64,000 nucleotides of DNA from positions 28,086,001-28,150,000 of the forward strand of contig NC_087249.1 of assembly GCF_037042905.1 (NCBI RefSeq), given 5' to 3'. The position numbers were made by a program, and so were the translations under genes. Below, one piece after another: positions 16,094-41,500 of this stretch. The notes under the pieces were generated by a model. It did no database searches, was not told where the DNA came from, and saw only the letters and a list, made by a program, of their open reading frames with translations. This DNA comes from Lytechinus pictus. Its lineage: Eukaryota. The first letter of the stretch is position 1; every line of letters begins with the position of its first letter.

Positions 16094-17165
16094 CAGGTTT
16101 AACAGCATGTGTTTCATGTATTGCATTTTTAGTTATCTAGCACACAGATAGCACATGGTTCTGAAACTAAAGTGTTCCAGTCATACTGTTAGGAATCAAC
16201 ATTGTTGATTGATACGGCACTATGTACAACAATAAAGCTAGTCTTGAGTTATGAAATCATTTCAAGATAAACTTGTTTAAATGGTTCTTAATTTCTGGGA
16301 AGGTTAATTACACTATCATAATGCAAGGAAAACATATTTACATACTCGGCATAACCCTGTAGATGATCACAATCAATGAAAAGAACATTTCACATCTGCA
16401 CATAATGAAACCACATGTCCATGTGCACACGCATAAGCTCTTTCCAAATGTTGCAAATCATCATGCTGAAAGTTATTATTACTGAAATAATTTACTATCT
16501 ATACATTACCAATTTGAACATTCATTGTAAGGACAATATGGTTTAAAAAGGGGTTTTAGTCCCAATCCACATACAGAACTCCTTTAGTACTCAAAATTAC
16601 TTCAGATAATTCATCTATGATTGGCCAAAATTGTACATCAAAGGAATGCTATTTTTACAAAAATTATTCCACTTTTAAAAAAATCTTTCTACTTGCTTTG
16701 TATTTGAAGTGAAAGTTCCCTTACCTTATGTATTCAATGACCTTAATTCATCCCAAGTGGGCTCAATATACCTCTAATATCATTTTGGAAACATTGTTCC
16801 TTTCAACATCATACTTCACAGAATCATGCAGTAAACATCACATGAATCCATGCATGTATTCATACCGTTTTTTTGTGAAACGAAAGCTACATTCACACAG
16901 AAGTATGACAATCTTATTTCATATAAATTCTGAAATCTACAGAAAATAAAGGAATTAGAATTACACCCCTTTGAACTCTGGAATAAGTTATCTTTCCCAT
17001 CAGGAACCCTGTAACACAAAGCCTAGCAATGATCATAGAAGACATTTTAAAGAAATAATAGCATTGACCACAATGTGTGATCAATCTTAAAATCAAGGAT
17101 ACGATCAATAACAAAGCTTTGTCTTACAGGCCCAGATGACTCTTTCCTACCTCAGACAGAGACAT

Positions 17166-17523
17166 CTAAAACTGTGAGAATCCCGGGGGTGGACGAATGC
17201 CCCCTTTGGGTTTGTAGCCAGATCCATGGAATTCTTTAGCGTGGACATTGAGGCGACTACCCTTACTCCCACCACCACCACCACCAGGGGATCCTTTCCT
17301 ACCACGGGAGGAGTCTCTACCGCCACCGTAGGGCACCGGGGACACCCTATCAGGGTTGGAAGAGGGTTTGAAGGCTTGAGGACCGGTCTGAAAGGCTGGA
17401 CTGGAATGAGCCATGGGGTTGAAGCTGTTCCCATCCTGAGTAGACCAAGGGATTTGGGAGTTGCCGTTAGCGCCCCTCTGATGATGGCGACTGTCGGGGA
17501 CCATGGGGCTCATTGGCGGGGTC
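17166..17523 (-). CDS. YTHDC2: YTHDC2 last coding exon, low-complexity tail with PAM2-like and PPPGF motifs
   Basis: Acceptor ttcccctggacag; phase 2 places it in the frame of ORF 17166-17513, ending …[30 protein letters not shown]. Confidence 0.82.
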
Positions 17524-20500
17524 CTGTCCAGGGGAAGTGGAAAAGAAATAGAACTATATTAGAAAATAATGAAGAGAGATTTCTATCCTGTGAGGCTCTG
17601 CATATGAAGGAGGTCAGATATTATGTACAAATAAGAAAACACTGCAATGCCAGTACATACAGCTACAGGAATTTGGTAGAAAACCTGGAACAAATATGTC
17701 CGTAAACGAAATAATAAACAATATATCCTACATAAATCAGATCCTGATGTACATGACCAACCATATTCTAGCTATGCTGTTGAAACAAAACGCCCATGAA
17801 GAAAATGTGCTATTCCGTGACGTCAATGATAGAATAGTGCACCATTATTCCATCATGGATGTCCCAGATCATGCAATCGCTACGTTCTACTTTCAATTTG
17901 TAATAAAACACTAAACAACGGACCTATCATTGTTTTCATCATTATGACATTGGTGTATAAATAATTATAAGTTCACTAAAAATCACATATCGTTATTTCC
18001 ACTGTTTGTTTGTTATCACTTTCATTTCCAGGGAGAGGGTCAAGTAGAGCATAGAATCTAATAATTCTACCGGATATATTTGTGGATGTATTACCTCTGT
18101 GAGTTATTCCACCTGCCAGCTGGACCACCCCTTGATGTGGGAGACTGTCTCCAGGCTCCCCCTTGACCTTGGTTCTGACCCCTGTAACCACCATTGGTCT
18201 GCTGGTAGGAGGGGCTTGATGGGGGTGGGGGTCGACCACTGCCACCACCACCACCTCTACCACCGTATGCACCTGATTATACAAGATTGAGTAGCATGGA
18301 GGGGGGGGGGGTGTATAGGGTAAAATAAAGAGAAGGGAAGTGAAAGAAAAAAAAATATGGGGAGAAATGGCAGACATTGGGTTTAACTTTAAATTATCTG
18401 TTCAGCCACTGAAGAGAGTTGTTTATAGCAGAGAGTTGAGCTGATTTGGCCTCAGATTGTGACAACACATATTATCTTTTTGTGTGTGCTTTTCAGCGAA
18501 TGCAGTATTCACCATACTATGTTTAAAATGAGCTGGGCTAGCCACATTCTCTAAATTAGAGGCTCTGGTTTGTCTAAGAGCCATCTATTTCAGAAAGTGA
18601 AGTCAATAAGGTCCTACTTTGTCAAAAAATACACAAATTTTCTGTTCTTCCTACGAATAAGTATGCAACATAAAGTGTCAAACTTGATTTATCGACAACT
18701 CTGGTTTGACTTCAGAGCTCTGTATTGAGTGCTTATCCAACTTATTTTTAATATGTAACAACATGTAGCTGACGATTTGTTCAGACCCAGGGCTTGCCCT
18801 GCATAGCAGTATCTGTCACATTAACCTGAATTTGAACTAAATTGACTATACTCTTCAGAAGAATGGCTTTGAAGAATATAATTAGTTTAGTTTGAACTTA
18901 CCTCCCTGTCTCTGATCATTCCCTCTCCAGTTTCCTCTTCCCTTCCCTTGCTGCTGAGAGAAAGAAATAAGTCTCATTACAATCTATATTCATCCATCAT
19001 TTACAATATTCCATGTTTGATTCACACAGGTGATTAACTAAATGCTACAAGAAATACATTCAAATTGAACTTCCATTTATTTTCATTATTTTTTAACCAA
19101 AACAAAAATATTATAGGAGTAATTCCATGAAATAATCATCCCATTTTTTTCCATTGAAAAACTTTAGATAAAAAAATAAATTAATCTAAATTTTCAAACC
19201 TGAATTCAAACTTTAAAATTTTGTTATGTTAAAATAAGTGTATAATTCAATATTCTCATTTATACATCAGTCCATGGGACAAGCTTTACCTGTGAATTTG
19301 CAAAGCGATTTGACAAACTGCCACTAGGAGGGCTGTTGAATTGTTCTATTGCTGTAAGAAAGGAGATTAAAAAATGAGTCACTTTACAAATCATGGCAAT
19401 TCCATATGAGAGATATAATACTGTTATCAACGTTTACATGCCTGTTGACATCTTGCCTTCCATCTTTACAATTCAATAACATGAAATATGCTACCAACTA
19501 TACTGTACTAACATTCAGGATATTAATCAATACTATTAATCCTTTTTCAAAGGAAAACTGTCAAATAAAGTCAAACATGCATTATACCAATACTGACTTC
19601 ATTAGAACTGTACAATTTTGGTTTGTAAAAGCTCATGTGATGTTACCTTTGTATATAACAATGAATATGCACTTTTACAAGTATATCAGAGGACCAATCA
19701 ACATTAAGGCTATTCACAATTTTATTCCTTTCATTATATTAAGTCTTTAACTGATGAAAGGAATATAAAAATGCATAAACTCCATAATTTTGTTCATATT
19801 GATACATATGTGCTTATTACTTTGCATGGGATGATAATAATATTACAGTGTATACAAATTTTAAGTCCAAGTGGGAGGATATTAAAGGAAAATAAGACAA
19901 TAGTGGAAAACACAGTTTAATTATGACACTGAATGGACTAAATTATAGGGATTTATTTTTAAGTACAAATGAGTAAATAATTCTGTGCACTGTCCAACTG
20001 TAACTACCTCAATGACATGTTGAAGAATTCCAATTCATAAATGAGCTGCTGCTTCCAGGTGGGTGTTTACAACATAAAGTTATGAGCAACTTTCCAAACG
20101 ACGGGTGACCTTTCATTGGTAACTAAATCCACATAAAAAAAAAAGGGTGTTTTATTAACCGCGAGAGGATCACCAGTTGTTCATAAAGTTGCTCGTAAGT
20201 TACAAACAGCTTTCTGAAACACCCACCAGGAATAGATGAATTCCCTAATTTAATAGGTACATACCCATTGGTTTAGGTCTCTGGCCAACTCCTACTGGCT
20301 GTTGTAGACCTAGAGATTGTTCTTCATTGGTCAGTACTTTAATCAATGTCTTCAGCACAGCCTGTAAAGATTATTTCATACAAAGATATTGTTTATTAAT
20401 AATAATATTCCGCATTTATATAGCGCTTAATACATCGGAACAACCTCTCTAAGCGCTTTACAGACATATTATTACCCCGGTCATCGGATCCTTGCATGCC

Positions 20501-23500
20501 CGCATACAATGTATGCACCTTCTCCACTCCCTGGGGAGCATTCCAACAAGAGTTCCAAGACTCAATTGCTAGGCATACTACATATTATAGGCTTTCACAT
20601 CCTACCGGGTACCCATTTAACACCTGGGTGAAGAGTGGCAAAGTGTGGATTAACGCTTTGCCAAAGGACGCTAGGCCATGGTGGGATTCGAACACATGAC
20701 CCTCTGATTACAAGGCGAGAGTCAGAACCGCTACACCATGACGCTTCCACGTTATTATCTACTTTCTTCTCTTTAACATGATTCTGAGCATACCATTTTC
20801 TTGGACATTCTCATACATATTCTGATTTGTCATTATCACATTTTGTTATGAAGATGCCATATGTTTTCTTTCAAAGGCTACGACCTTACCCAAATAATAA
20901 ACACTGATTTCATACAGGCAAACATTCAAATTCACTCACAAAAAAAAAAAAAAAAATACAGGGTCTTGGTATCTGGCTACAAAAATAAACACTGGTAGTA
21001 AGAGCTATATTGTTTCTATTCTTAATATTTATTCTAAATCCATAGAATTTAGATCTATAGAAATGATCTAAGAATGAAACGTTATTTGAGACACTATACA
21101 ACATACCTCATCAGCTTGAGACCAAGGCTTAGCTGGAGTTCTCATCCTTCTCATGAACAATGTATGCCATTTGGTCCTTAACTGCAGGACCAAACTCGCT
21201 GACTGTATACAAGGGAAAACAAATTCAATGCTTGTTAGACATCACATACTTGAAGTTTGCCTTTTTGAAAATAGGTTAGAAAACAGAAATATCATGTTTC
21301 AATATTGCAAAACGGAAGACAAATTTCCATAACCAGAAGATGTCTTCCATGAAATGAATTTATAATGCTGCACGACTGATGGGGTACAATGGGGTACTTC
21401 ATTCATCAATTCATTAATTTAGATTATTGTTTTCCTTAATCTAACCCTAATCTACCATATGGGCAAATTTATCCTCATATATTACCATGGACCACACTAA
21501 CCATTGGCTCAGACTTGATGACCAACCACTCATCCAACTTGAGTGTTGCCTTGGCAACCTTGACATCATCATCCTCTCCTTCACTGGAGTCATTAGCAGC
21601 ATCTCCATTGGGTCCCATTCTGGATGCTATGGATGATGCGGTCCCTTCCGGTAGGACAAGGGCATCGTAAGGTAGACGGGTGGGGCCACAGAACAGGGCG
21701 ATGGTGATGGGTGAGATGAGGGTCACACACCGCACACTGGTACGGAAGTGAGAGCTGAGGAAGTTTGGAGACACAGAAATGATGGCTTTGTAAGGACTAA
21801 GGTAGGGGTAATGATGATAACAATAATATGCACTATGTATCATCAGGAAAAGTAAATATCCTGCTATAGGACATAAGTTGATAAATTATCAAGTCTGTCA
21901 AAGTCCTGCTTGATTCTCCAGTGGTGCAAAATATTCACTGACACACAATTGCCACCTTTCGCAATCATCACGGGCGCTAATATTAGGGTCCCCTAACACA
22001 AAAGTTGACGCTTTTGATTTTTAAGATTGATTGTACATTATAGTCAATAGAATCAAACGTAGAAAACTGCTCTACAATCAATGCTAAGATTTGTGTTACA
22101 GGGGGGTTACAGGCCCTACAGATCTGCTTTTCGTGTGCAAAATTCTTTCCCGCGACACCCGCACGCCATACATGCAATGTATTACGACTGATGGCTGGAG
22201 ATATTCGAAATGCAGGACCTAAAATAGAATATGACATGGATAAGAAAGTGGTTTTTCAAACAAATCGAGTACATATTGAGTGAGGAAAAACTTACTAAAT
22301 TAAGGCTTAGATATAGATCATTACAGTCCATCGAATCAATATTGCATTTAATGTGGATTATTGGTGGATCTCTGGCAATTGATTCCATGGGTCAGATCAC
22401 CTCTCTAGCCGAACCCATTTCGCATATGTACACAGCGTATGCAATACGTTTGCATGCGGGTTTCTTTTGTTCACTCCTTCTACACAAACGATACGCCTCT
22501 TGCACACGATGTAAAGGGTATTATGTTTTACTTTCCTCAGAAATGGGGGTTAGATTCAAATTCCGGGGGGACCACTTCCATTGATGGTTGGATACCAGGC
22601 ACGACCATGGGGTTTTGAAAAGTACCCTAAACAAGGGAAGCAAGTCTTTTCCAGATTATGAAAATGCATCTTTTAACAATTATTTGGCTTGTGAAACCCT
22701 ACAAGTATTGGAAATATATCCCTTTTTTCAGTATTTTAATCATCGTTTTTGACACTTTTATAACGTTACATAGGCCTATACGTAACATACTTACCCACTC
22801 TTTCCCTTTTTACGCGTTGTTGCGCCTGGTATCCACTCTTCAATGAAAGTGGGCCCCCCCGGTCTGGGAGGAACCAAATGTGGATTTGGAAAGTCGTCCT
22901 AAATCGGATATATTGCTGTTACCATAGTAGCAACCAGAATTTTGCACACGAAACGCAAATTGAATGTTTCCGTTCCAGATGCGAAACGAAAAAAAAATCT
23001 CATGTCACACAATTTGCATTGCAGGACAGAGTTTTAAGACCATGACGACGGGCCCAAAAGTCTCTTCTAAAATCAACTAACGTCGTAAATAAGCGTTCGC
23101 GTTCTTCCAACAAAAGGTCGGGAATGACAACTTTTGAACCGGGGGTAAAGAAAAAAGGGATAGGGGAAGGGATGGACTTCATGTCTCCTTCATACCTGGT
23201 GAGCTCATCATATAGAAGCCAGTCTGAAGGTAAACTATCCACAGTTCTCATATGCTCCTCACCAAGTGAGGTCTTGCCCTTAGCCACTTCATGGAGTACT
23301 GAGTTGGGATGGAAGCGCACCTTGGATTCCGTTCTGTAATAAACAGAGATAAACAATATCAGCATTGTAATCATCATAGTAGTTGTCATCATCATCATCA
23401 TCATCATCATCATCGTCACCATCATCTCATCATCGTAGTCATCATCATCATCACAATCATCATCATTATTATCATCATCATCTTCATCATCATTATCACA

Positions 23501-26500
23501 ATCATTATCACTAGAGCCACTACCAATCACCCTATTGACCACCACCTTCTTTTGTCACTATTAAGATCACTAATACTAACATGCCAACATTTATATAGTG
23601 CTTAATACGATGTTTCTAACTGCTGCATACTATTATTCCGGCTATAGCAAGGCCACCCTGATCAGGTGCTCGAGCATTCAAGGAATTTCTTCCTACCGGG
23701 TACCCATTTACTACACCTGGGAGGAGAGTGGCAAAAGTAGATAAATGCCTTGCCAAAGGACGTGAGTGCCGCGGTGAGATTTGAACCCAGACCTTGTGGT
23801 TCATAGTCTGGGGACTTATCCACTGAGCCACAACACCTCTACAACAGTAATCCTCATTGCCTAATCCTCAATATCTTTAATCATGCAACTTATAAATCCA
23901 CTCTGCAGAGTGCTCAAGGCACTCATTGTTGTAAGTACTTTGGTTATAGCCCATCCACCATTCCAACACACAGGTAAATCAAGGAATTCCTGGCAGTTAC
24001 CTATTGTAGTTCAGAGATACTATCATCATAAATGTCAAATGAAGATTGTTTCTATAACAAACTATCAGATATGAAAGCCTGAGAAATCATTATTTCACTC
24101 ATCAGTACACTGTTGACAAAGAACTGTAAAGATAAGCGTCCACATCATTGTTTCCAAGAGGATTTATCATGTTTAAAGAATTAAACCGATGGAATTCCAT
24201 TGTCACGATCGATCACAATGCTAAGTGAAACAGGGCCCCCAATATGACTTACTTGGTGGTGAGTTGTCTGCGTTCTCTATCTACTTTGAGGATGTTAGGA
24301 TACATGCCAGCACATAGAGATGCCTTGACCACAGCCCAGTTCTCTGAGTTGGTGTTGAGATCACGGATGTCTCCTGGTCCCCTTGCCCTGACAAAGCCAG
24401 ACGCTCTCAGCTGGCCTAACAGCTGGGTTCTAAACAAGGATAAAATATTTAAAGGGATGGTCGGGCTGAAAGTATGTATAGCTAAATAGATAGAATAGAA
24501 TTCACTGAGCAAAATGCTGAAAATTTCATAAAAATTGGACAACAAATAACAAAGTTATTGAATTTTAAAGTTTAGCAATATTTTGTGAAAACAGTCATCA
24601 TGAATATTCATTAGGTGGGCTGATGATGTCACATCTCCACTTGTTCTTTTGTATTTTATTATATGAAAATAGGTTTATTCAAATTTTTTCCTCCAAGAAC
24701 TAGAAAAATTTGATTGTCAACTGATTTAGTGCATTAGATATTTATTGCTGCAACTTATTTCATTATAAGGGAGACATATTATTCACACAAGTATGAAATA
24801 ATGAAAAAAATATGATTTTATGTAATAACATAATAAAACGGAAAGTGGAGATGTGACATCATCAGCCCACCTAATGAATATTCATGACGACTGTTTTCAC
24901 AAAATATTGCTAAACTTTAAACTCCAATAACTTTATTATTTGTTATCCGATTTTGATGAAATTTTCGGCATTTTGCTCAGTGAATTCTACTCTATGTATT
25001 AAGATACAAATATTTTCAGCCCGGACCATCCCTTTAAAACAATGCAATAACCAAATACAATATTCTGAACCTATTTTAGACACAATTCACATAACCACGA
25101 AGCTATAAGCAAGAATACAGTGCTACTTTATTCGCGATGTAGATTGCAATTGACAAAATAAATGACATGTACTACAAGGTATTTGAAGAACAGATTAAAA
25201 GTGAATTGTGACAAAGAACACTGTGTGGCCAGCAAATAGCATTCCACCAAAATACATACATATATATATATTTCTCTACATCTATGTTTAAGGTGATTTT
25301 TTTGGTCTTCTTTCATTGTTCGTAATGCGCCTTAACGCCCTCTACCTTCGTCTTTATGTGTATTATGACAGAATAAACCCATTCATTGACTTCACCCTTT
25401 CGTAGGATGTAGGCATATATATATATATATATATATTCATGAAGGAAAACAAATATATTTATTCACCCTTCAAGTGCATCTTTCTTTTCATTTTCTCATT
25501 TTCTTAAGTACAGAGACATGCAATTCATAAAATTGTTGATTATTATTTGAATAGACTTCCTCTAATGAGTTTAAACTTCATCTGATCTTTCAAAATAGAT
25601 GTTCAAATGACACAATACTCATTATCATACCTCATTCCAACAATCATCTCCATGGTTGCTCTTGATAAAAAGTTTCTATCACAGAATGTACCTTCCCATC
25701 CATCACTACGAGCTCGCTGCCATGACTGGTACAGATATTCAAATACAAAATCAGACATGATTGAGTGAATGCAGAATTCTAATCATATAATAACATGTGA
25801 TGGAACATTACTATTTCATTTTCAATACGATTTCCATTTGGCAAAAGGTAATATTATTGATATTAACGACTGTACAATTTTTGTCAAACAACAGAATCTG
25901 GCTGTTAAAAACATTAAAATGCATCGACTAACATCTATTCTAATTTAAGTAGAAATATGGTGAAAAGGGCAAGTGCTGATCCTGGTTTTGGAAAATTTAA
26001 GTATGTCAGTGCTGCATATAATTGAAATGTGAATTTACTTGTAACAACACCTCTCCCTGGGAAACAGTGTATGTTACTGATGAAGCTATCCTGTATGAAT
26101 AAGTTTTAATAATAATAATAACAAGGTCATAAGGAACAGCAACTCCAGATAACAAAGGATTTTGGTTTTGTTATTGAGATCTCAGTAGGCGGTGCTGCAC
26201 CATCCCGAGTTTGCTCAATCTCGAGATTTTAGCCCGATCAGCCCTCTTCGCGATTAATCTCGAGATTCATGAAACCCCGTCTGCACCATCCCACGAGGAG
26301 CTATATCTGCTCGAGCGAGGCAACAAGCCCGATATTCCGGGCATGCGCACTTTCGGATCTTGGAGTTTCAACGGCCCGCGCTTTTGAATAACTTCCCGCG
26401 ATATGCAAGCAATGAACTCCTTTCATTAGTACTTTCGCCGAATTCAACCGGTGTTATGCAACAATCCTTTCAGCTCAGCGAGTGAAGAAGTGATGTATTC

Positions 26501-29500
26501 TTCGTGAAATATGATGGCGGAGTAGGAGGCAACGACAGAGAGAGAGAGAGAGAGGGAGAAGGAGGAAAGAAATGCTATTTGCTCACATTTTGCGAAGGAA
26601 TAAGACAACACTGCTGTCAGTGTTGTTATTGAATATGACCATCGTCGATGCGATGAGCGCCTCCCCCTTCGGTCTGGTCTCTCCCGGGGTCTCTCCCAAA
26701 ATCCATTCACTGGTGGGGACACCATCGTTGCTTATGAACGCTATTCGCATGTATAAAGTTGACTTTCGCACGTGTTTATGTTTTGACCAAGGCGGAAGTG
26801 GAACGCGAATTGCATTATGGACTGACGTCATGAATAAATTACCCCGAGTCCAATCTCGAGTGCGTCTGCACCGACGAATTAGCGGGATAATTCGTAAAAT
26901 AGCGCGCTATTTTGCAAATAAACCCGAGTTGACTTGGGATTGCAATCTCGAGATTAATCCTACGAACTAGCGCGATAATTGCGTCTGCACCGCCAACTAT
27001 CTCGAGATTTTTCAGATCGGGATAATTTGCCGGATCAGAAATAGCGCGCTAATTTGAAACTTCGGGATGGTGCAGACGGCCCTAGTGAGAGTGCTTATAA
27101 GCATGACTTGGAGGAAATAAAATACTTTACTAAATGAAGTCACATAGATTGGTGCCTTGATGACTTCTACTGACCTGGAATGCCCTAAGCAAGGCCATGT
27201 GATCACTGAAAGTGTTGGAAGAATATTTCTTGCGGATTTGCATGGCACCACGTTTCTGAGAAGGGTGGCTGGGAAGCACAACTGTGAATAGAGGTGACAT
27301 GAAAAAGTTAGGTTACACAATGAAGTTGTAATGCCTAGAAGAGCGACTAAATCTGATGAGTACTGCTCAACTGTCTCTTCAATAAGTATTGAACAAATAA
27401 GAGATTGATAATTACACTAGTCATACTGAAACCACATACTATAAAACTTCTATCACTTCTATCTTGAAAATAACAGACATGGCACAGATAACAATAACTC
27501 AGATTTATCAACCAGTTATGTATCATTATCATGTATTTACGTATGCCCAAAGGTTGATTCTCAAAACATTGATGGGGCGCACAGCACATCCCTAGCACCC
27601 GTGCCTACATTCGCCACTCGATATAATGCATGAATCTAAGATTTAGCAACAGGTCATGTATTTTTGTAATAACATTGGGGGGGGGAGGCATGCATGCCTT
27701 GCACCCCTGCTTGCATCCACCACTGGATATAATGCATGAATCTAAGATTTAGCAACAGGTCATATATTTTTGTAATAACATGGGGGGAGGCATGCATCCC
27801 TTGCACCCCTGCTTGCATCCACCACTGGATATAATGCATGAATCTAAGATTTAGCAACAGGTTATGTATTTTTGTAATAACATGGGGGGGGAGGCATGCA
27901 TCCCCTGCACCCCTGCTTGCATCCGCCACTGGATACAATGCATGAATCTAAGATTTAGCAACAGGTCATGTATTTTTTGTAATAACATGGGGGGGAGGCA
28001 TGCATCCCTTGCACCCCTGCTTGCATTCGCCACTGGATATAATGCATGAATCTAAGATTTAGCAACAAGTGATGTATTTTTGTAATAACATGGGGGGGGG
28101 GAGGCATGCATCCCTTGCATCCCTGCTTGCATCCGCCACTGGATATAATGCATGAATCTAAGATTTAGCAACATGTCATGTATTTTTGTAATAACATGGG
28201 GGGGAGGCATGCATCCCTTGCACCCCTGCTTGCATCCGCCACTGGATATAATGCATGAATCTAAGATTTAGCAACAGGTCGTGTATTTTTGTAATAACAT
28301 GGGGGGGAGGCATGCATCCCTTGCACCCCTGCTTGCATCCGCCACTGGATATAATGCATGAATCTAAGATTTAGCAACAAGTCATGTATTTTTGTAGTAT
28401 CATGGGGGGGGGGGGAGGCATGCATCCCTTGCACCCCTGCTTGCATCCACCACTGGATATAATGCATGAATTATTCTTACATGGGTCTTTGTAGGCAAGA
28501 GCACACACGATGGTAAGGACTGGATCAAGGCACTTCAAGACAATGGCATAGAGGACCATTTTACCGAGCCTTGGGTCTACTGGCAGGTCTGCTAGGTGAC
28601 AACCAAGCTCCGTCAGGTCCTCCCATTTATCCATAGCATCAATAGACTGTCGACAAAAAATATGGAGGAAACCTTTTGAAACTTGTTAGATCAACATTCA
28701 ACACAGATACTGTAACAGGCATCTAATAAAGTACAAATTGATGTGTCAAACACTGTATGAAATAATCTAATTGTAAATTCTATTTATAAAAGCTTAATAA
28801 GTTTCATATTAGTTTATGTATCCATGTGTAAAATATGAGTGTCTGTAAACACCTTACATCATTAGTAAACTTTTGAGGAGGCCAACGACACATTCCTCAT
28901 GATGTAAAGAGGTCAGTGAGCTCCCAGTAATTCACAATGATGCTTGCTAACTGCACATTTACATAAAATATGTACATCTGACCCCCTACATGTAATACCT
29001 TCCTGAAATGATTCGTGCTTATTCAAAGTTAGAATGTTTTCTACTTCCGAATACAAAGTAATGAAAGCTACAATACTATCAAATTATCATCACTGGTTCA
29101 GTTCATGAAGTGAAATGGGAATGGAGACAGAAGGTATTGGATGTATAAAACAGTTTTAAGGAATTGTGCAATGTACATTTTGTGCAATGTTAGAGAAAAT
29201 AACTTGTTATCATGAATGAATAAATGGTTACTAATAGTTGGAAACCGAAGATATTAGAAGTACCTTGAGTAGATTGACGGCATTCCTGATAGCTACAGTA
29301 GCAGGTGGTTCAGGAGCTCTCTTCAAGAAGTCACCTACTGATGTTTCGTTAGGGGCAAGAAGTTTGGTGTGAAGACACAATTCCTAGAAAGGATAATAAT
29401 TACGTATCAGGTTTTGATATTTTTGCCCATCAGATTCAGTTTCATATTACAGTGATCATTTCACTTCCATCGTTCTTGTTCCCAGAGGAAAGCATGATTC

Positions 29501-32500
29501 AAAAGTTTAGAGATGACAATTTACACAGACAGATAGATACTAAGAAGGGAATGCACAATATGGTTTAAATATTAAATCTTATTGAGATATTTTGCAATTT
29601 ATGTATCAATTCTAGTAAAGAGGAATAAATATAAAATCAACAAAGTTTAAGAGTGACAGCCATATCATGTTCAAACCTTTCCCTAACATGACAAAAAAAA
29701 GTCTCAATTTTCCTATCAATATTCATATCATCAATGACATATGAATTTTGGATACTGCAAAAAGAAGGGATTTTTTTTATAGAAACATGGTAAAAACAAA
29801 GAGAATTTGTTTTCTTACATGTAATGGTGTTCTGAGGATTTCAGGAACCTGGAAGTCAGGTAGACTCTGGTAGCGAACTCTACTAATCAGATGAAAACAC
29901 ATTCCTGGACGAACACGACCAGCTCTGCAAAATATAAACACAAACAAAGTATGATATCAATTCATATTTCTGGAACCCTCAATGGGTGAGTTCAAGTACG
30001 GTGTTGAAATCGGGTGTTGTGACAACACCAACACCAGCCACAACACTGTACTTGAAATCAGGCTGGTGTTGGGATTAACCTCGAAAAATATGACGTATTT
30101 CTGGCAGTTCGTGTTGAAGACTGGTGTTGAATGTTGTCTGCTGTCTGTTGTCACATCACTGACATCGTATCCAGAGCAAGTAAAAAACTGTACATGATTC
30201 GTAGTCTGAAAAAGTTCAACCTCTCTAGAAAAGACCTGCTAACTATCTTTACATGCTATCTACGACCCATACTAGAGTACTGTGCACCTGTGTGGCACTC
30301 GTCCATAACAGCCAATGAATCAAAACAAATAGAATCTATCCAGAAAAGAGCATTGCGTATAATTTTTGGCAAAGATTATTACTCATATGATAATGCACTT
30401 TCAACTTCTGGCCTTACAACCTTGTATGACAGACGTGTCACTTTGTGTATGAAATTTGCACTGTCCCTTGAAAAGTTCTTTCCTCATTGGCTATCCCCCA
30501 AACAATCCGAATTTAGAGCCCTCCGAAATAGTGAGAAATATAGACTGACGAAGTGCCGCACAGAACGATACAAGAAAAGTACCATGCCCTATCTAATCAG
30601 GCTTTTAAATGATAGATGAGTCTTTTAAATGATAGATGAGTAACACATATGTTTCCATGAAGTTTAAATGTGCTATGTATTTCCCCAAATGAATTGATCT
30701 TATAATGTATTAATTACCCTTTTTATATCCATGTTGAATATTATCAATTTGCTATGTATGTTCAAGTAATTATATATTCTTTTATATTGCAAACACCAGA
30801 TGAATGAAACAGTGGCCAATCTTACAAATTATGCCTTTATCCTATTTTGAAACAATACCTCATTTATTTTGAAACTTAAATAATAATTTGCTGAAAGATG
30901 TTTTTTTAACCCCCCCCCCTCCCGTTCCATATATCTTTATCTCCATTATGTTGAACCTTTTCGATTTTTTGTTCAGCAGGACCATTTTTTCTTCTTTACG
31001 TTCTACTTGTAAATGCTCCATCAATTATATGTACATGTATATTTTTCTGTAACTCCTGCCAGTAGGCCTACTCGTAATTACATGTAGCATCACTTCTAAT
31101 ATCCGCTTCCTTACACACACACTCAACTTATCATTTCTCTTATTTTGGAATCATTATTGTTCATTATAATTTTTACGGTATATCGAAATTAGTATTGTAA
31201 TTTTTGTAAATTAGAATCATTATTATTGTAGCCTTGAATCATCACTGTATATTTGAATTGTTATGGTTAAATTGAATTAAGATTATTATTGTAATTGAGA
31301 TTTTATTCATGTCTATGTGCAATTTATATGTTTTTATTGTAAATTCAACGGCAATTCAGCCTTCGTGGCTGCTAAATTAGCTTTTACAGTTACGATGAGT
31401 ACAATTCATTTGAGCTTTATATATTTCGATGAAGAATAATGTTTATTCTTTCGAATTCTTGAATTAATTAAAGCATTTGTATTCTGTGCTATGAGAATAT
31501 AATGCATTTCTCTCTGATTTCATTTTTTTCGTCGAGCCTTCTTGCGTGAAGTTGAGATGATTTAGCAGCACAGCGCAGAGGCGTGACGTCAGGTGCTATC
31601 GATAACGCAATCGATATCGTTCCTCTGAACCTAACTCGGTTCAGCGGCCTTTTAACGCTCTCAACACCAACACCGAACTTGAAATCACCCAATGACATCG
31701 CAAATATTTCTAATAAAAAATTTAACCAAAGACTCAGGTCCTTTTTTTACTATTTACCCCTGTGTTAAAGTCTGTGGTTGAATTGTGCTAATCTCAGTAT
31801 TTCATTTTTACCAGATATTTAATCTTTATGGTAAACAGTTTTAAGCAACAAAAACAGTGTTTATTTCACAGTATCACTGTTCAACCATCTACATCAATAG
31901 TATGGTTTAGGTGTGTACATGAATTGACCAAATAAGTATATCAAATAAAAATAGTTATTGATCATAAGGTATGAAATAACACAGGACAATAATCAGAACA
32001 CAAGTACTGAATTAAATTACACACCATCATCTTAATAGTTTGATATTAATACATACCTTCCTCTTCTCTGCTTGGCACTTGCTTTGGATATCCAGTTGCT
32101 CTTCAGTGATGAGATGTTGGCTATTGCATCAAATGATTTCTATAATAATAATAATAATAATAGCTGGATTTATAAAGCGCTTTTTGCCAGAGGATACAAA
32201 GCGCTGCTATCATTACCCCGGCTTTAGTTCGAGCTACCATCACCGGCGCTCAGTGCATGCAAGGAATTAATCCTGCTGGGTACCCATTCACCTCACCTGG
32301 GTCGAGTGCAGCACAGTGTGGATAAATTTCTTGCTGAAGGAAAACACGCCATGGCTAGGATTTGAACCCACGACCCTCTGTTTGAAAGGCGAGAGTCAGA
32401 ACCACTAGACCACGACGCGCCCACAATTTAAGATAAACATTGTTTATTTTAACATGTCACTCTGTATTATCATTGGAATACATGGTCTAAAACTTTGCCC

Positions 32501-35500
32501 AGATTTGTCTTATGAAGCAAAGATGAAAATTATATATATATATCTACTTCAAAATGTGCTAATTATAACAACCCTTGACAATCAATAATGTAATAATTCA
32601 AAATGAAAACATGCAAACTATCTATCAAGGACAGGATAAGGAACAGTAGTTTCTAACGTCAAATTACACAAATTTAAGACCATTTTCATGTAACACTTTC
32701 ACAATTTCTGACTTCTCACCTCTTGAAAAGCTATTGGATTTCTATCCTAATTGCTCTCCCCATCCTTCAGGACTTATTCAATGAAATGTTTTGATAAGTT
32801 TGATACTAAGAAACCATGTTTACTTGACTAGCTAAGGGCAAAATTGTTATTAATAACAAACAGTATGAAACACGACCCCGATCGCTTTTTTATTTCAAGA
32901 TTACGGAGTGGAAAATCGAGATTGATACATTTGCCAAAGGATAGTAATGCCAGGTACGTAGTGATGTCATACCTACCTCCTTGACTTTTCCAGAGTCTAT
33001 AACAAAGACTACATCGTTGATAGTTACACTGGTTTCTGCTATATTTGTTGAAAGCACCTGTAAACAGCAAAATAAATGGAAACAAATATTCCTTTCAAAC
33101 AATCCTTAACATCAAATAACTGTTAAACTTGAACATGTGAGAGGACACCTGAATGGGAGAATGAGGTAATTACTATATTTCTAGTGCTGATTGAGTTCTT
33201 TAAATTTTTGCAGGGCAATACAGATAACAAAATGAATGGAAACAAATATTCCTTTCAAACATTTCTTAAAGTCAAATAACAATTAAACTTGAACATGTGA
33301 GAGGACACCTGAATGGGAGAATGAGGTAATTACTATATTTCTAGTGCTGATTGAGTTCTTTAAATTTTTGCAGGGCGATACAGATAACAAAATGAATGGA
33401 AACAAATATTCCTTTCAAACAATTCTTAAAGTCAAATAACAATTAAACTTGAACATGTGAGAGGACACCTGAATGGGAGAATGAGGAAATTACTATATTT
33501 CTAGAGCTGAATGTGTTTAAAGTTTTACAGGGTGATACAGATAACATATGGGAGGGTAAACATTCTCTACATTATGGCTGAGTTTTACCTTAAGTACATG
33601 ACTCTTCACATATTCATTCATATTGAAGTTAACACACTCATATCTTTTTGTATAAAGTCATAATTACGAATAAAGCAAAATTTGTCCTCTTAGATTGAGA
33701 TGACAATAACAACACAAAATGTGAAGTATATTTAGCAATGCGGTCATGGGGGTGGTATGGCTGTTATGGTTGTCATTCTTACAATCTTTCTAATGTTCTG
33801 GCCTGGTGTCTTGAAGACCTTCTTTTGATCATGACTCTGCATGCTGGAATGAAGTGTGTAGATCTGATAGGACTGACGATCACTGAAGGTATCATCCTGG
33901 AGCAACATGTCACGGAGGGTAACAATGTCATCATAACCAGGTAGGAAGACAAGTATGGCACCTCAGAGAAAGAAAAGAAATTAAGAATCATATGAAAGTA
34001 GCTTCTAATTGTCTAATATATTTGCAGTAAATGGCACAGTAATGAAAGGTATTATACTGTAAACCTTGACCTTCCATAATTTTAAGTGTTAAAAAAAAAG
34101 CAAATAAATGTGGTACTTACGTCTTCTTAGGCAAATATAAAGTCAAACAGATTTCTGTGGACCCAAGAGATTTAACTGTATTCACTTCCAGTTTTTTTCA
34201 ATGGGGTAGCCTCCTTTGATGACATTCTGCATGAGGGCCCTAATGTCTACTGAACACTTTTAAATAGAGCCACTGTACAATATAGACTACTTAACAAATA
34301 ACATTGTAAACATTGTCCTTTTTTAAAATGAAATGGTAAACAACCATGTAAGTTTTACAATTTATCAATCACAATCATAAGCTTTATCATCATGGTATCA
34401 TCACCCCTCCCCCTCCATTATAATCATTTACACACATTATTCTAAAAAAAATACCTTCTTGTGAGTTGCTGCATATGTAGTCAAGGAGAGCAAGGATCAG
34501 ATTGAGGTCAACCCTTTCATCATCAAAGCTGTGATGATAAGCTTGAAGGAGCTCTCTGTCTTCAGCACTAACTTCACTGTGATTCCTCAATAACTCACTC
34601 TCATCCTCATTGGTAGCTTGGACCGTGTCCCTGTGGGGGCAAGATTCAGAAGGAATTTGATGTCAGACCAGACAGACCTAGAATGCATAACAACTTGCTT
34701 AAATACCATACGGCAGTTCCATTAAATAATCAGCCTGTTTAAATACAAGGTCTGCACCTTTCTCTATATTTACTTCACTTCACTGGCGGCTCAAGTTATG
34801 ATAATTTCAAAGAATAAGAACTTGACTAAGGTCCCACCTATAATGGGCAAGATGAAATAACTTTGTGGAATTGCCAAAAGGTCAGTTTTTTAAGAGGTTC
34901 TAATGCACATCTTATACATGCCAAATATATACCCTGGAAACCTAATAAACCCACAGCAATACTATGGATCTTCATAAACCTTTTCACTTAGATATCTTTG
35001 GAAATATTTCTACTAATTGAAAATGGTCAGCTGGTTTGCTGAACTTACAGATATGCTTGCAGAAGTTCCAATACTTCTGTTTGGTTGAACATCCTTGCAA
35101 AATCCAAAGCTGACCTGTAAACAAAAGTAAAACATTTTTTACAGTAAATCTGAAATTTAAGGAATGTTTTTTAATATAAGCTGTAACACACCTATGACCG
35201 ATAACATGGTAAAGAAAGGCAAAGAATACGATGTTTCTCAGAGAACTAACTGAAACCTACAATTCAATAATGAAGAATTACTTACAATCATTAACCTACA
35301 TGCATGTCCATCCCCACTTTTTCCCCTTATTACTTCACTCCACAAACTGTTCAAGTCCTGATAACCTGAGTGTTACAACTTAACATATAAACTTGATGTG
35401 AATATCCATATCAGATATTGAGACAGAGTTGCCTGAAATAAATAAAGTGTGCTGTCTCATAAGACTGTTCGTACAGTAACACATGACTTAACACACAACT

Positions 35501-38500
35501 GGAACATGTTCTTCGGAGCTCAGCTCAGGCAGCTACATAGGGATATTCAGCACAAGAAAGGGTCAACAGTCACGCATAAAGTCAGGCGGAACTTATAAAC
35601 AGTTTTGTGAGCTCGTCCTGTGGTCTTTATTTACCTTTCATCGGATGCTTTGAGAGAAGCGTTTGCACCAAGGCTAAGAAGCTGTTCAACCATCTCTACA
35701 TTGCCTCGCCCTGCTGCAACCATCAGTGGAGTCACACTAGACTCTGAATGTGCATAGTCAACTGTGTTCATTTCAGAGGAAAAAAAAGGAAAAGGACCAT
35801 AACGCACAGTCACAATACCAATTTGGCTTCAAAGTTTTGCGGAGGATGATGTACTCCTCAGATGCTTCACGTTATAGAAAAGCTGAACAATGACGTGAAA
35901 GTGAAATAGATTAACTTTGTTAAAAGCTTCAATTAATATACATTCTAAATTCAAAAGAACCATTGTCTTTAAGAGAATGTTTGTATATTTTCCATGCCTA
36001 CAGGCTTGCAATCTAGATGAAGAAGTCCTTGGCTGGGAATGATTCAAGTGATAACTGAAATGAAAAACTAATGTCTAGTATGGGAAAACTAATAACTACG
36101 CCACTCACCACTGACATTCTCATTGAGGAGAAGGTAGAGGAGTTGAGAGAAGTAATCATCATCACCTGTCTTCCAACAGTCTGAGAGGGCGCTATCCATA
36201 TCATGGATGAGCCACTCTGCCATGTCCTCAACATCAATAGATGTCTGTGAGAATAAACAAGATTTTTCATTTAACTTTTGAGCATTATGTCTGTGTCAAA
36301 TCGTGTGTTTATAAAAATAAACAAGACATAACTGATTTATCAAGAAACATCTGGCATGCTTTAGGATAGCCAACTTGAATAAAAGAAAGCAGAATCTAAT
36401 TCAAGGTAATATCAAAAGATCAATTGTAAAATTTAATTTCAAAACAAAGAGTACACTATCACAATTTGTCCCCATCCTTCATATAAATCTATTTTCACTT
36501 TTACATGAAATTAGTAATTAATGAATAATTTAATCAGTAATTGATCATCATTATTGTAACATTCATTCATATACCAATAATATTCCTACAACACCATTTC
36601 AAATCATTGTAATTTTATGTTTATTCTGTTGATTTTTTAATGTATGTTTGTTACTGTGTTTAATCATTTGAAAATGAAAATAAATCCAACTGACATTAAA
36701 CTGGAATAAGATGATCCTACTTTGCTGGACTCAAGGACATTTTCTTTCAAAATTCTATTTAATCATCTTTTCATATTAACCGTCTGCTTGCTGAACCAAA
36801 AGCAAGGCACCATATGGATGGTGATGAACTATATTCTTACATCAGCTGCAGATGGTCCCATAGTTGTAGCTCGGAAGTCTCTTGATAACGAGTCTACTGA
36901 TGGGTGCACAGGAGCCACTGAATGGCCCTTGCTTGCTGAGGCTCCGCCTACCTGGTCAGTATTGTACCATTTGTTGAGCTGTTGTTGTTGCTTGGCAACT
37001 GATGGATAGCAAGTGGAAAGAATCTTACTTTACCAAAGGATGGTATATTAAAACAATATCTAATCACAAAACTGAATTTATAAAGATACAAACTGATGAC
37101 AAACATTTACATATTTATTGTAAATAATGGTACATGGAACATATGCAAGTTTCTAGGAAAGAAAACTAATGTGAAGATAAAAAAAACTCAAAATAATCAA
37201 AAAACGTAAATTTTTTCAATTTTCCTGATTATGACCAGCATGAAATACGATTGCAGGGATTATTCCAGTCAGTATATTTAAGAAAACCTCTTGAAATCCA
37301 AATAGAAACCACATACATATTAAAGAAGTATTCCTTTTCTTATGCATACATGATAAAAATTCTTCAGTTCTTTCAGTCCTACCATGATACCATTACCTTT
37401 TCCTTTCTCCTTCTGATATTCAATCATCTTTGCATTTGTGTACCGTGTGCTGAATAAATGAAAAAGAAAGTTTTAACATAATATAAAAAGAAGCATGATT
37501 TAGGATATATTTTTCCCTGTAGTAGAATCATATTCAGGTCAAATTATAATTGTTTAGTACCAGTCCTAATTACCATCACACATTTCTTAATTACGACACA
37601 AAATTATTCATTATAATTACTTCATGTCTCATAAATGCTAGTTCAAGTTGTGGTAACAAACAAAAAATGAGTTTGATATAATGAAATGACCATTAAAGAA
37701 TTTGTGTATAAATAAAAAGAAATAAGTGCCAAATGATTCCAGTAGGAAATGTGAAATTGCTGAGTGATTAACCAAACCATTATGGCATTCCAGTTTGGTG
37801 GGGTTTTCCCCCAAGCAATAATATTACACATGTGCGTGCCTGTGTTGCTGATCTTCAGAGTGGTCATTTTTCAGTCAAGATTTCATGACTTCAAAAAGTT
37901 CAGTTCATGTAAAGATCTAGGCCGAGGCTGAAATAATGACAATTAGCCTCGGTTGATATCAAAATCTCTCTCATGAAATCATTGCTACTGTTGACAATAC
38001 AGTTCAGTAGTCTAACTTTTAACCTTTACTGCCTCATTGTGACTTACCACTTCAGGGCATCTTCAAGAAATAGCTCTTCAACATCAAACATATTTCCTGG
38101 AACTAGAAGACAATGGAAAGAAACAAATTCAATTAAGCATTCATTTCTCCAGATAACATATCATATTTCTCTTCTATCTTTGCTGAACATCACATAGCAG
38201 TAGCATAGCAATTTACACATATACAAAACATACAAACGGTGGGGAATGTTTGTGTTTACATACATAAATATCGGTTGCTGGCATCAAACAAGGGTTTTCA
38301 TTTCTTTTTACCAGAGGACAATTTTCCTTCCCTATCAGCAATATGTCTCTCTCACTCTTCATGGTTCTGAATATAATCAAGAATGCAGCTCACATTTACA
38401 CAATAAAAAAAGTCATTGAGACCGCACTGCACAGTTACCACCTACAAGGTTTGAATCAATATCAATTATCATCAAAACAATAATGAACGGATGAGAACCG

Positions 38501-41500
38501 AGCAAAATGTAAGAAAACAGATTCACCTACCAGAGACAATGGGGCAGTTATTGAAGTAGCGTACAAAGAGTTGAACGTCAAGGGCAGCACTCATGAGAAC
38601 AAGTGTGAGATGTCTTTTCCTTGTCATGAGGTCTCTGATCTGAGTCACAAGGAAATCACTAAATCTATCCCTCTCATGAATTTCATCCTGGTTTGGAAGA
38701 TAACAAAAGGAAAAACACTAAATAGTTGAACAAGTCATCACGGATTTGTAAATTATAGCAGCACAACACAACACAATATAATTAACATAAATTAAAATGA
38801 TTTTAAATTCGAAATCTAGAAAGCTTTGAATATGCGTAAAACAATATAAATGGTAAAATGTTTCCTGTTAAATATAAGTTAAACGATCATCTTAAAAGAT
38901 ATTTCATGCATACTGCATATTTCATTAACACAAATGACAAAGCTTTCCACTCATATGTGACCACGTAACATGTTGCAAGAGGTGGAGAGGAGGGGTTTTT
39001 TGCATCTCAACTGAATAGGAGTTTGATGGACACTTACAATAATAACATGAGTGATTACATCAAGGGCTGCATCTCCTGTCATTAGGGTTCGTAGTAGAAC
39101 ACCGTTGGTGCAATAAGTAAGCAGGGTCTTCGGTGAAACTCTGCAAGTGAAAAGACATAGAATTATCTGAAGGTAGATAAGAATTACAAGTGTATTTCAC
39201 AGCACTTTGAGCAGTCGTAGATTGATAAAGTGCTATAATGTATAAAATTGGAAATTGGAAATTATTATTATTATATCAATCTGTATTGAAATTTTAATCA
39301 AACTACTGTTTCATAAATCCAAAATCAGCAACATGTTCATGAATGAATAATTTCTTTTCAAAAAGGAGAAAACTCCACCCTTATTCTCCATGCCCCTTTA
39401 AGGATGGTAATCACATACAAGCTCTAATGGCAAGTGCTGAAGATTCTTGTGGTCAAAGTAATGTGTAAGGCTAAGTCGTAAAAATGGGTATTGACTTAAT
39501 AATGGTGGTAAAGGTTTTAGAATAGGTGTAGATACAGAAGTAGGAGCAACAGATTTAACCCTAAAAGAGCCGGATTATTGGGACCCCTCTCACAGGGGGG
39601 GGGGGGGGGTGGTGGATTACGCCCCCCCCCCTGAGATTTCGGCCTTCGATTGCACGAGCGCCGCAAAAATTTGCAGTGGTATTGTGCGACACCACACCAC
39701 ACGGCTGTATGGTTAATTTTTTGAAATAAGATTTTTCATTTAATGAATTATTTATGCTAATTTATGTATGAAATAAAACATTTGCTCTAATCAACTATAA
39801 TACGGCCCCAAAACTGCTAATTTTTTATTCTCAGACTCTTTGTAGAATACCGATCAAAAAATTTGGAATCACAATTTTTCTGATGTATATTTTATTTCTT
39901 ATGAATTTCTTTGTTTTTTTACTTTGTTTTTTATTGGTTTTTTCAATAGGAATTGCTGCAGACTTAATTCTGATCATAAACAAGACAAAATTAATTAAGT
40001 TTAATCAGTAAAAGTAGAAATAATGATACATTTATGAATTTTGGCTAAGTACACAATTTGCATTGGATTAAATGAATTTGTACATAAATTCACGTTTTTG
40101 AGCAGTTTTGGGTTTGACATGCACCTAATGTTGCGTAATTTCGTAACCGCAGACCTGGGCATCGCAAATTTGGTCTCAAAAGTTGTGCAAGATTTGAAAG
40201 TAAAAAGCTCCCCGGGCCTTTTAGGGTTAAGGTAGAGCACTTCTTACAAAATCAGATATTGACTAAAAATATAGGGTCTGTCCTTGACATCCGATGTAAC
40301 TGCATACCTTTCTATTTCTACTTTTCTGTTGCCAATATTTGAAATGCATACCTGCTTTCTAGTCTAATTTGATAACCAACTGTCTGACCTATTGCCTCTC
40401 CTCTTTCAGCTGCAACCCTCTCAGATACTGAAAGGGCTGATATCCGTCTAGGCTGGGTACAGATGATGCGACATGGCCTTTTCATTTCAAAGCATTCATC
40501 CAATATGAATTGAGGAAGCTGTTCAAATGAAGGAATATTTTACTGTTATATGAATAACGGGATAACGTAGTATTTATATTACGCAATTGTCTATTTGTCT
40601 ATTCAAAGGCACACAATATATAATCACAACTTAAGCTCCAGGTGCTCTTTCAAGAGCTGAGTGCATTCAAGAAATCAATCCTGCCAGATAGCCATTCACC
40701 CAACCTGGGTTGAGTGCAGCACAATATGGACACTTTTCTTGCTGTAGGAAAACACTGCATGGTTGGGACTCAAACCCATGACCTTCTGATTGAAAGATGA
40801 GAGTCAAACCACCTGATCATGATTTCACTTCTTATATTAATGTTAGGGTCAACTAGTGGCGTTTTAAGCAGTGAAACTGTCCATGGGGGAGGGGATGATC
40901 TATAGAGTTCCCCTCCCCGTCAAATAGTGAACACACAAAAATTTCTGCCAGTGTAAGGTCATAGGCCTTATCAATCGGCTGATTTTCACATGAAATATTT
41001 CCCCCTCCAACATCAAAAAGTGGAATAATTGAATAACAAGATTTTTTTAAAGATGTACCTGAGTTGTCTTTCCAGATCCAGTATCACCAACAACTAGGAC
41101 TACTCTGTTATTATTGATGGTTGCAAGTATTTCATTCCTCATAGCATAAACTGGCAGCGTCTGACGAAAGCTATCAAGATCTGACCGATTTCTCTTGGAG
41201 GGCACCTGAGGAAGACTGCTGTTGAGACGTCCAGTCGCTTTGTTCATCTCACGGGCTGGGTTTACTGTTAATCATATACATGGGAAAGATTTAGCTGTAA
41301 CTCTATTTTGAATCAGCTTTTCAGAGCATGTTTTTACTGGGTGGTTGATGACTCCCTTGTCAAATCTTGGCTTTAAAATGTCCAACCTCAGACATTCGCA
41401 CAAATCTTTATATGAAACATGGAGGCATAGTTTTTTTTTATCATTTTTTGTTTTTTTGATAATCAAATGGTTTGGTAATCAATACTTTAAAAAATCATGC

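Follow-up and report, generated by a model that had tools for sequence, protein, structure and literature searches.

A conserved C-terminal block with PAM2-like and PPPGF motifs in the YTH-less YTHDC2 orthologue of sea urchins, a candidate PABP- and GIGYF-binding module

The closest described analogue of the protein tail analyzed here, which ends the YTHDC2 orthologue encoded on the minus strand of a 64-kb stretch of Lytechinus pictus DNA (contig NC_087249.1; the whole stretch is called the window), is the silencing domain of GW182/TNRC6. In TNRC6, a PAM2 motif of this domain binds the MLLE domain of PABP (poly(A)-binding protein) and an RPPPGL peptide binds the GYF domain of GIGYF1/2, adding to translational repression; the RPPPGL peptide of TNRC6A/C has been crystallised with the GIGYF1/2 GYF domains (PMC10187677). 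The consensus of GIGYF/Smy2 GYF-domain ligands is PPGΦ, in which Φ is not Trp, and Φ is Phe in the motifs of tristetraprolin (TTP) and ZNF598 (PMC10187677). Through tetraproline PPPPGF motifs, these two proteins recruit GIGYF1/2-4EHP to the mRNAs that they bind, and GYF binding is lost when the motifs are mutated (PMC10187677, citing Fu 2016 and Tollenaere 2019). Canonical PAM2 motifs occur in Paip2, Ataxin-2, Tob, PAN3 and eRF3. Within the motif, positions 6, 8 and 11 are solvent-exposed or not conserved, Ala7 and Phe10 are invariant and Pro12 is usual (PMC2854688).

The urchin tail resembles the TNRC6 silencing domain in being a C-terminal region, predicted to be disordered and a candidate effector, that carries both a PAM2-type and an R-PPPG-Φ peptide. 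The PAM2-type peptide runs …EFHPG in TNRC6 and …EFHGSG in urchin YTHDC2. The two differ in that the TNRC6 contacts are established and those of the urchin tail proposed; in spacing, which is 12 residues at the extreme C-terminus of the urchin protein and ~80 residues at an internal position in TNRC6; and in Φ, which is Phe in the urchin and Leu in TNRC6. The urchin tail has no homology to GW182/TNRC6 outside the motifs, and lacks the RRM, the UBA domain, the Argonaute-binding region and established CCR4-NOT W-motifs. Pfam found neither an RRM nor any other domain in the tail, so that the likeness to GW182 is one of analogy and not of membership. With TTP and ZNF598 the urchin tail shares the PPPGF core with its Phe, in one copy as against three, and the hosts are a helicase in one case and a zinc-finger RNA-binding protein and a ubiquitin ligase in the others. 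With canonical PAM2 motifs it shares Leu3, Asn4, Val5 (as in eRF3), Ala7, Glu9, Phe10 and the disordered setting, 'NVHA.EF' being also the core of the eRF3 PAM2-C motif (PMC2854688); it departs from them in having Gly12 instead of Pro and a sub-threshold Pfam score. As for the host, vertebrate YTHDC2 and the YTH-less forms of Hymenoptera, Diptera and nematodes, together with Bgcn, share the R3H domain, the DEXH helicase with its ankyrin insert, HA2, the OB fold and the C-terminal extension, colinear over ~1150 residues. A PAM2 or PPPGF tail is missing both from vertebrate YTHDC2, which ends just after the YTH domain, and from the hymenopteran protein, which stops ~20 residues past the C-terminal extension.

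On the minus strand, the reverse complement of 17166-17192 reads CCA CCC CCG GGA TTC TCA CAG TTT TAG, that is PPPGFSQF and a stop, which closes an open frame at 17169-17558. Upstream of it, stop-to-stop translation reveals a long series of small exons on the same strand, from ~50.0 kb down to 17.2 kb, and tblastn places these exons in colinear order with YTHDC2 orthologues, starting at residue 1 and reaching as far as the YTHDC2-specific C-terminal extension goes. RNA evidence was drawn from contigs and reads, in four runs, over the region 16600-22500. It defines the GT..AG junctions 21202|21502, 20361|21107, 19351|20265, 18950|19290, 18272|18902 and 17523|18095, the last of which is supported by two runs of contigs and two of reads. 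One RNA contig continues unspliced from 17522 across the stop codon to 16933. Splicing the RNA-defined exons yields a single open frame that terminates at the PPPGFSQF stop, and the product is the RefSeq Lytechinus pictus YTHDC2-like isoform X2 (P0343, 1389 amino acids). When this protein was compared with the window, all 31 of 31 tblastn pieces were colinear over residues 1-1389, and the exon cores were 100% identical. Because of the RNA junctions, the contig that reads across the stop and the identity to the RefSeq protein, the tail is the genuine C-terminus, and the PPPGF exon is the genuine last coding exon of the YTHDC2 orthologue. In the loci of the other four urchin species, the stop codon has the same position. 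The urchin proteins all keep -QF at their end, preceded by Ser or Gln. The features of the gene, all on the minus strand, are as follows.

17166..50015 (run 50015 to 17166), minus strand: whole coding sequence of the YTHDC2 orthologue, 1389 amino acids (colinear tblastn, Pfam).
20265..21754, minus strand: three exons of the YTHDC2-specific C-terminal extension, 21502-21754, 21107-21202 and 20265-20361 (RNA junctions, tblastn).
18902..19351, minus strand: two micro-exons, 18902-18950 and 19290-19351, joining the helicase C-terminal extension to the tail (RNA junctions).
18095..18272, minus strand: RGG/Gly-Pro-rich exon of the tail, which is predicted to be disordered (RNA junctions, translation).
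17166..17523, minus strand: last coding exon, with a phase 2 acceptor; the 3' untranslated region (UTR) extends at least to 16933 (RNA junction, contig across the stop).
17166..17177, minus strand: last three residues, [S/Q]QF, and the TAG stop at 17166-17168 (same stop position in the loci of the four other species).

Small variants were seen in these exons. The intron that ends at 18950/18953 on the minus strand has a CAGCAG tandem acceptor, and isoforms X1 and X2 differ by one Gln (…NSQQQGKG and …NSQQGKG) because of it. At 17479 and 17400, RNA reads show an in-frame 3-base deletion, present in most of them, which gives the Lytechinus variegatus form without one Arg, and also a synonymous AGT to AGC change. 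Both lie in the variable part of the last exon; among the variants listed, none falls in the motif block described below.

The protein has the domain order of YTHDC2: R3H, a DEXH helicase core with an ankyrin insert, HA2, the OB fold and the C-terminal extension (Pfam matches of P0343: R3H, DEAD, Ank_2, Helicase_C, HA2_N, HA2_C and OB_NTP_bind). Pfam found no YTH domain (PF04146) in it at E<=1; in the brittle-star orthologue the YTH match reaches 1.9e-40. Using YTH-bearing orthologues as tblastn queries, we found no credible YTH match in the 64-kb window, the sole match of a YTH segment being intronic with 26 bits and E=0.45. There is no space for YTH exons, because the RNA junctions join the exons of the C-terminal extension straight to the tail exons. 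The same YTH-less architecture is found in five urchin genomes and in a sea cucumber. Loss of YTH in Strongylocentrotus purpuratus had been reported earlier with a warning of possible assembly or annotation error (Jain et al., PMC5832417), and this caveat is removed by the RNA junctions and the six genomes examined. The YTH loss is thus real and common to sea urchins and a sea cucumber; starfish, a brittle star and crinoids keep YTH.

We modeled the C-terminal part of the protein (residues 921-1389) with AlphaFold2 on an alignment of 13 echinoderm and hemichordate sequences. The OB domain and the C-terminal extension have a predicted local distance difference test score (pLDDT) of 70-88, and residues 1165-1389 fall below 50 and have no secondary structure. 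The tail is therefore predicted to be disordered, and it is in such surroundings that short linear motifs are expected. Of the four tryptophans in this G/S/N/Q-rich tail, Diadema keeps three (AWRQS, GRWNNS and PWSTQ, in exons 18095-18272 and 17166-17523). They loosely resemble the W-motifs through which GW182 binds CCR4-NOT, and do not match the usual G/S/T-W-G/S/T context.

Two candidate motifs lie inside the last 30 residues of this RNA-supported C-terminus.

17223..17258, minus strand: PAM2-like motif, candidate ligand of the PABP MLLE domain (Pfam PF07145, determinant match).
17178..17195, minus strand: RPPPGF, a proline-rich motif of the PPGΦ type that lies four residues from the C-terminus, candidate ligand of a Smy2/GIGYF-type GYF domain (sequence, conservation).

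RPPPGF contains the PPGΦ sequence, with a hydrophobic Φ that is not Trp, and resembles the TNRC6 RPPPGL peptide (PMC10187677). In the PAM2-like motif, residues L3, N4, V5, A7, E9 and F10 match the published determinants (PMC2854688), and LNVNAKEF of S. purpuratus is a near-canonical PAM2 core. The Pfam PAM2 model (PF07145) scores 14.3 bits in L. pictus, 16.7 in S. purpuratus and 14.2 in Diadema (E 0.006-0.035). No other Pfam family matches the tail pieces of L. pictus and Diadema; that of S. purpuratus has, in addition, a weaker match to RFX5_DNA_bdg (13.4 bits). A PDB sequence search with the S. purpuratus tail gave nothing at E<=10. A reading of the C-terminal -SQF as a PDZ ligand was ruled out, as Diadema ends in -QQF.

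Chance occurrence was estimated with 200,000 composition-preserving shuffles of the 215-residue tail, which is 21% Gly, 13.5% Ser and 12% Pro. PPG[FILMV] appeared in 5.8% of the shuffled tails and PPPGF in 0.27%; the LN[PV]xAxEF core appeared in 5e-6, and both motif types inside the last 31 residues in none. PPPGF by itself is weak evidence in so Pro/Gly-rich a tail, and its conservation among urchins weighs more.

The urchin sample comprised L. pictus, L. variegatus, S. purpuratus, Diadema antillarum and Diadema setosum, from the three genera Lytechinus, Strongylocentrotus and Diadema; S. purpuratus, L. variegatus and D. setosum were added through a cluster look-up, and the nearest full-length relatives are echinoderm proteins. 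All five species end in LNV[HN]AKEF[HQ]GSG[YF]KPKG[GA][IV]RPPPGF[SQ]QF and a stop, and all five are without YTH. A second reading of the last exon, taken from genomic sequence of the other four species (loci L002-L005), gave the same block and the same stop, so that the conservation is independent of gene models.

17169..17252, minus strand: conserved 28-residue C-terminal block, which includes the conserved linker GSG[YF]KPKG (Lytechinus and Diadema compared).

Between Lytechinus and Diadema, amino-acid identity is 86% in this block and 48% in the remainder of the last exon. Synonymous sites in the block are saturated, with 16.5 differences over 19.5 sites (proportion of synonymous differences, pS, 0.85; 0.75 in the remainder of the exon). 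Non-synonymous differences amount to 5.5 over 64.5 sites (pN 0.085), as against a pN of 0.345 in the exon remainder, four times lower in the block (Fisher p = 5e-5). The PPPGF codons read CCA CCC CCG GGA TTC in Lytechinus and CCT CCA CCT GGC TTT in Diadema, five third-position changes with zero amino-acid changes, and the PAM2 core shows four synonymous and zero residue-altering changes. Substitutions among the urchins are limited to PAM2 positions 6 (H/N) and 11 (H/Q), the linker (Y/F and G/A), the I/V before the Arg and the residue after PPPGF (S/Q); these are all sites that the motif definitions leave free. Because conservation is far above chance, PPPGF is not a chance match, and we are highly confident that strong purifying selection has kept the 28-residue block in echinoids, whereas the tail around it has drifted. 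The original prediction, made from the letters of the window, was of a YTH-less YTHDC2 that ends in PPPGF paired with a PAM2 motif. The gene assignment is borne out by Pfam, tblastn and the RNA junctions, and the pairing by the C-terminus established above; the proposed reading of PPPGF as a GYF ligand fits the consensus and the TNRC6 peptide. It had also called for an alignment of orthologue tails, in which both motifs are co-conserved in 5/5 urchin species with synonymous-only changes in the motif codons.

We then compared the tails of other echinoderms and Metazoa. YTH is retained, and PPGΦ is missing from the tail, in three starfish, a brittle star, two crinoids and a hemichordate. The sea cucumber Apostichopus has an orthologue without YTH that carries APPPGFQHL and, 36 residues on, PNPRARPFDP, which fits a loose PAM2 pattern. 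Across Metazoa, ~50 YTH-less orthologues, mostly of Hymenoptera, lack both motifs and stop ~20 residues past the C-terminal extension, and among ~155 YTH-bearing orthologues a tail PPGΦ is found in five, a PAM2-pattern peptide in three (the starfish) and both in none. The YTH-bearing orthologues with a scattered tail PPGΦ are those of frogs and a barnacle. The expectation that the motifs track YTH loss across metazoans thus holds inside echinoderms and fails outside them: as far as these sequences suggest, the link is confined to echinoderms only, and a general rule in Metazoa by which the motifs replace YTH is ruled out by the YTH-less Hymenoptera without either motif.

The PAM2-pattern peptide of the three starfish, STLNASAPP[FW]QG, is common to their orthologues (P0262 at ~1230, P0270 at ~1229 and P0250 at ~1289), where it stands in the linker before YTH. 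It was ruled out as an orthologous PAM2, being placed before YTH instead of at the C-terminus and receiving 8 bits or no score from Pfam PAM2. In three frog YTHDC2 proteins (P0259, P0266 and P0282, at ~1217-1221), the pre-YTH linker shares a PPGΦ match, KSPPPGLT. The last coding exon of the urchins also holds an older element.

17379..17447, minus strand: older conserved island with the core P[LIM]AHS[ST]P[AS][FY] (orthologue comparison).

In its longer form, P[LIM]AHS[ST]P[AS][FY]xQGP, with WSTQDG before it in urchins, the island occurs in the tails of urchins, the sea cucumber, starfish, the brittle star and the hemichordate (P0260, P0262, P0250, P0270, P0222 and P0319). It is located after YTH where YTH is present, and it is older and more widely kept than the PAM2/PPPGF block.

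Wider sequence collections were searched as well. A large protein collection, queried with the tail exon alone under a length filter that leaves out full-length proteins, gave no candidates. A scan of metagenome contigs with the back-translated tail exon gave 259 pattern matches, of which 0 encode a relative. The conserved RTQLL exon, used against a representative library, retrieved for the most part fragments of exon size and distant orthologues of ~55% identity, and none of these library matches has a similar tail. One eukaryotic metagenome contig (that of P0001) carries a YTHDC2 exon 90% identical to the RTQLL exon of the window, keeps YTH downstream and has very short introns.

We propose that the last 28 residues form a selected bipartite module of short linear motifs, at the end of a 225-residue tail, predicted to be disordered, that stands in place of the lost YTH domain. 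LNV[HN]AKEF would dock into the MLLE domain of cytoplasmic PABP, and RPPPGF into the GYF domain of GIGYF. Messenger RNAs that YTHDC2 holds through its helicase, R3H and OB parts would in this way be linked both to the protein of the poly(A) tail and to cap-blocking 4EHP-GIGYF, and GIGYF may bring its partners DDX6 and CCR4-NOT (contacts: PMC6648886). The bound mRNAs would be translationally repressed and destabilised, much as by the PAM2 and RPPPGL pair of GW182/TNRC6. The original prediction had likewise supposed that such a bridge between cap and tail could silence germline mRNAs. We give this whole mechanism a rough probability of 0.4. Of its parts, binding of PABP by the candidate PAM2-like motif seems slightly better than an even bet, and binding of GIGYF by the candidate RPPPGF falls somewhat short of one. 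That YTH was swapped for a GW182-like mini silencing module recruiting PABP and 4EHP-GIGYF, in an ancestor of urchins and sea cucumbers or independently in each, we consider unlikely.

The PABP/4EHP-GIGYF mechanism presumes in L. pictus a GIGYF with a Smy2-type (Asp) GYF domain; sea urchins have eIF4E2/4EHP and PABP (PMC6387300), and GIGYF is described as conserved from nematodes to humans (PMC6648886). In mouse, tags from cross-linking and immunoprecipitation (CLIP) of YTHDC2 are enriched near 3' UTR ends and the N6-methyladenosine (m6A) pocket is dispensable (PMC8887132). Proposed effectors of YTHDC2 are XRN1 and XRN2, and the effects on RNA levels are small (PMC8887132, PMC13254979). The proposed model fits these mouse data, namely the position of the CLIP tags, the dispensable pocket and an effector step that is still unsettled. 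The original prediction had named the pair the best candidate for an undescribed system, which overstates the case: the two short linear motifs are of kinds already known, as is the helicase, and what is new is their combination as a GW182-like module on it.

Several observations weigh against the coupling of YTHDC2 to PABP and GIGYF. PAM2 position 12 is Gly and not the usual Pro in 5/5 urchin species, and the motif stays under the Pfam gathering cut-off (14-17 bits against 20). A PPGΦ sequence is insufficient for binding, as Drosophila ZNF598 (PPPGF, PPGL) and GW182 (PPPGL) failed to bind Drosophila GIGYF (PMC6648886). Conservation also covers the GSG[YF]KPKG linker and the terminal QF, both outside the two consensus motifs. 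In the one holothurian, the motifs come in the reverse order to the urchin, at a different position and both upstream of the AHS[ST]P island, and neither PNPRARPFDP nor the sea-cucumber tail matches the Pfam PAM2 model. Finally, our literature search found no link of YTHDC2 to PAM2 or GYF ligands, which leaves the idea novel and also without independent support.

The alternative that survives best, doubtful as we hold it to be, is that the conserved block binds something other than GIGYF. Its proline-rich part could bind a CD2BP2-type GYF, WW, SH3 or profilin domain, or the whole 28-residue block could be one extended ligand for a partner specific to YTHDC2 (MEIOC, RBM46, XRN1/2, the ribosome) or could regulate the helicase intramolecularly. 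The conservation outside the consensus motifs is what brings this forward, since a single different binding partner could therefore be meant; the failure of the fly PPGΦ peptides points the same way, as does the fact that the known partners of YTHDC2 are MEIOC, RBM46 and XRN1/2, and not GIGYF or PABP (PMC8887132, PMC13254979). However, the variable positions within the motifs are exactly those that the PAM2 and PPGΦ definitions leave free, PAM2 is the main Pfam match and its core is near-canonical in S. purpuratus, and MEIOC and RBM46 binding in mammals needs no such tail, which mammals lack.

An improbable alternative is that only the PAM2-like motif works, on PABP or on the MLLE domain of a UBR5-type ubiquitin ligase, and that RPPPGF...QF is a flank that tunes affinity or stability and has no GYF partner. 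It is the PAM2 part that has independent profile support and near-canonical residues, MLLE contacts can reach past position 12 (PMC2854688), and YTH-bearing starfish have their conserved PAM2-pattern peptide and no PPGΦ. That peptide, however, scores only 8 bits or nothing with Pfam PAM2. RPPPGF lies 12 residues past the PAM2 core, too distant for a simple flank, its five codons have changed only synonymously where synonymous sites are saturated, and the sea cucumber also has PPPGF.

It is highly improbable that PPPGF is a functionless match that arose in a Pro/Gly-rich, low-complexity tail. The 5.8% of shuffles with PPG[FILMV] and the scattered PPGΦ of frogs and a barnacle would allow for it, but the motif does not differ among the five species, which span three genera, its codons change only synonymously and the pN of the block is fourfold below that of the exon remainder; the many synonymous changes also argue against an overlapping constraint from, say, an RNA structure or an antisense gene. 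Least probable of all, and close to negligible, is that the tail is an artefact of annotation or assembly with YTH exons missed or a false end, as the caution of Jain et al. on S. purpuratus (PMC5832417) might suggest, given that RNA joins the extension exons directly to the tail exons and reads across the stop, that 64 kb hold no credible YTH match and that five urchin genomes and a sea cucumber share the architecture.

Elsewhere in the window, the introns of the gene hold tRNA-derived repeats resembling short interspersed nuclear elements, with a tRNA-related segment of the GGATTCGAAC… type, at 20343-20740 and, as related copies, at 32222-32424, 40630-40806 and 46329-46505. The copy at 20343-20740 has an RNA depth in the thousands at 95-99% identity, and these reads therefore presumably come from many genomic copies. 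In the last intron (17585-17978), reads antisense to the gene reach a depth of ~13 in raw runs and a contig word depth of 90-200, and represent a repeat or an antisense transcript. A fragment of a non-long-terminal-repeat retrotransposon reverse transcriptase lies in an intron of the helicase gene at ~45000-46400 on the minus strand. At 27480-28470, in the intron adjoining the HA2 exon (28482-28649), there are about nine tandem copies of a unit of ~104 bases, in which one minus-strand frame is open and lies outside the mRNA model. A convergent neighbour gene with coiled-coil-type exons occupies 1900-7200 on the plus strand. Rfam gave 0 matches in the whole window.

How YTHDC2 represses or destabilises its targets when mitosis gives way to meiosis is still unsettled, and the urchin tail names PABP and GIGYF-4EHP as candidate effectors. 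It is a natural variant in which YTH is gone and two effector-type docking peptides have been kept under selection across three genera with saturated synonymous sites. For testing the tail, Lytechinus pictus and S. purpuratus offer models that are tractable in embryology and genetics. If the swap of YTH for such a module is true, it would reveal the effector pathway, reached via partners in other animals, by which YTHDC2 shuts down the mitotic programme at meiotic entry.

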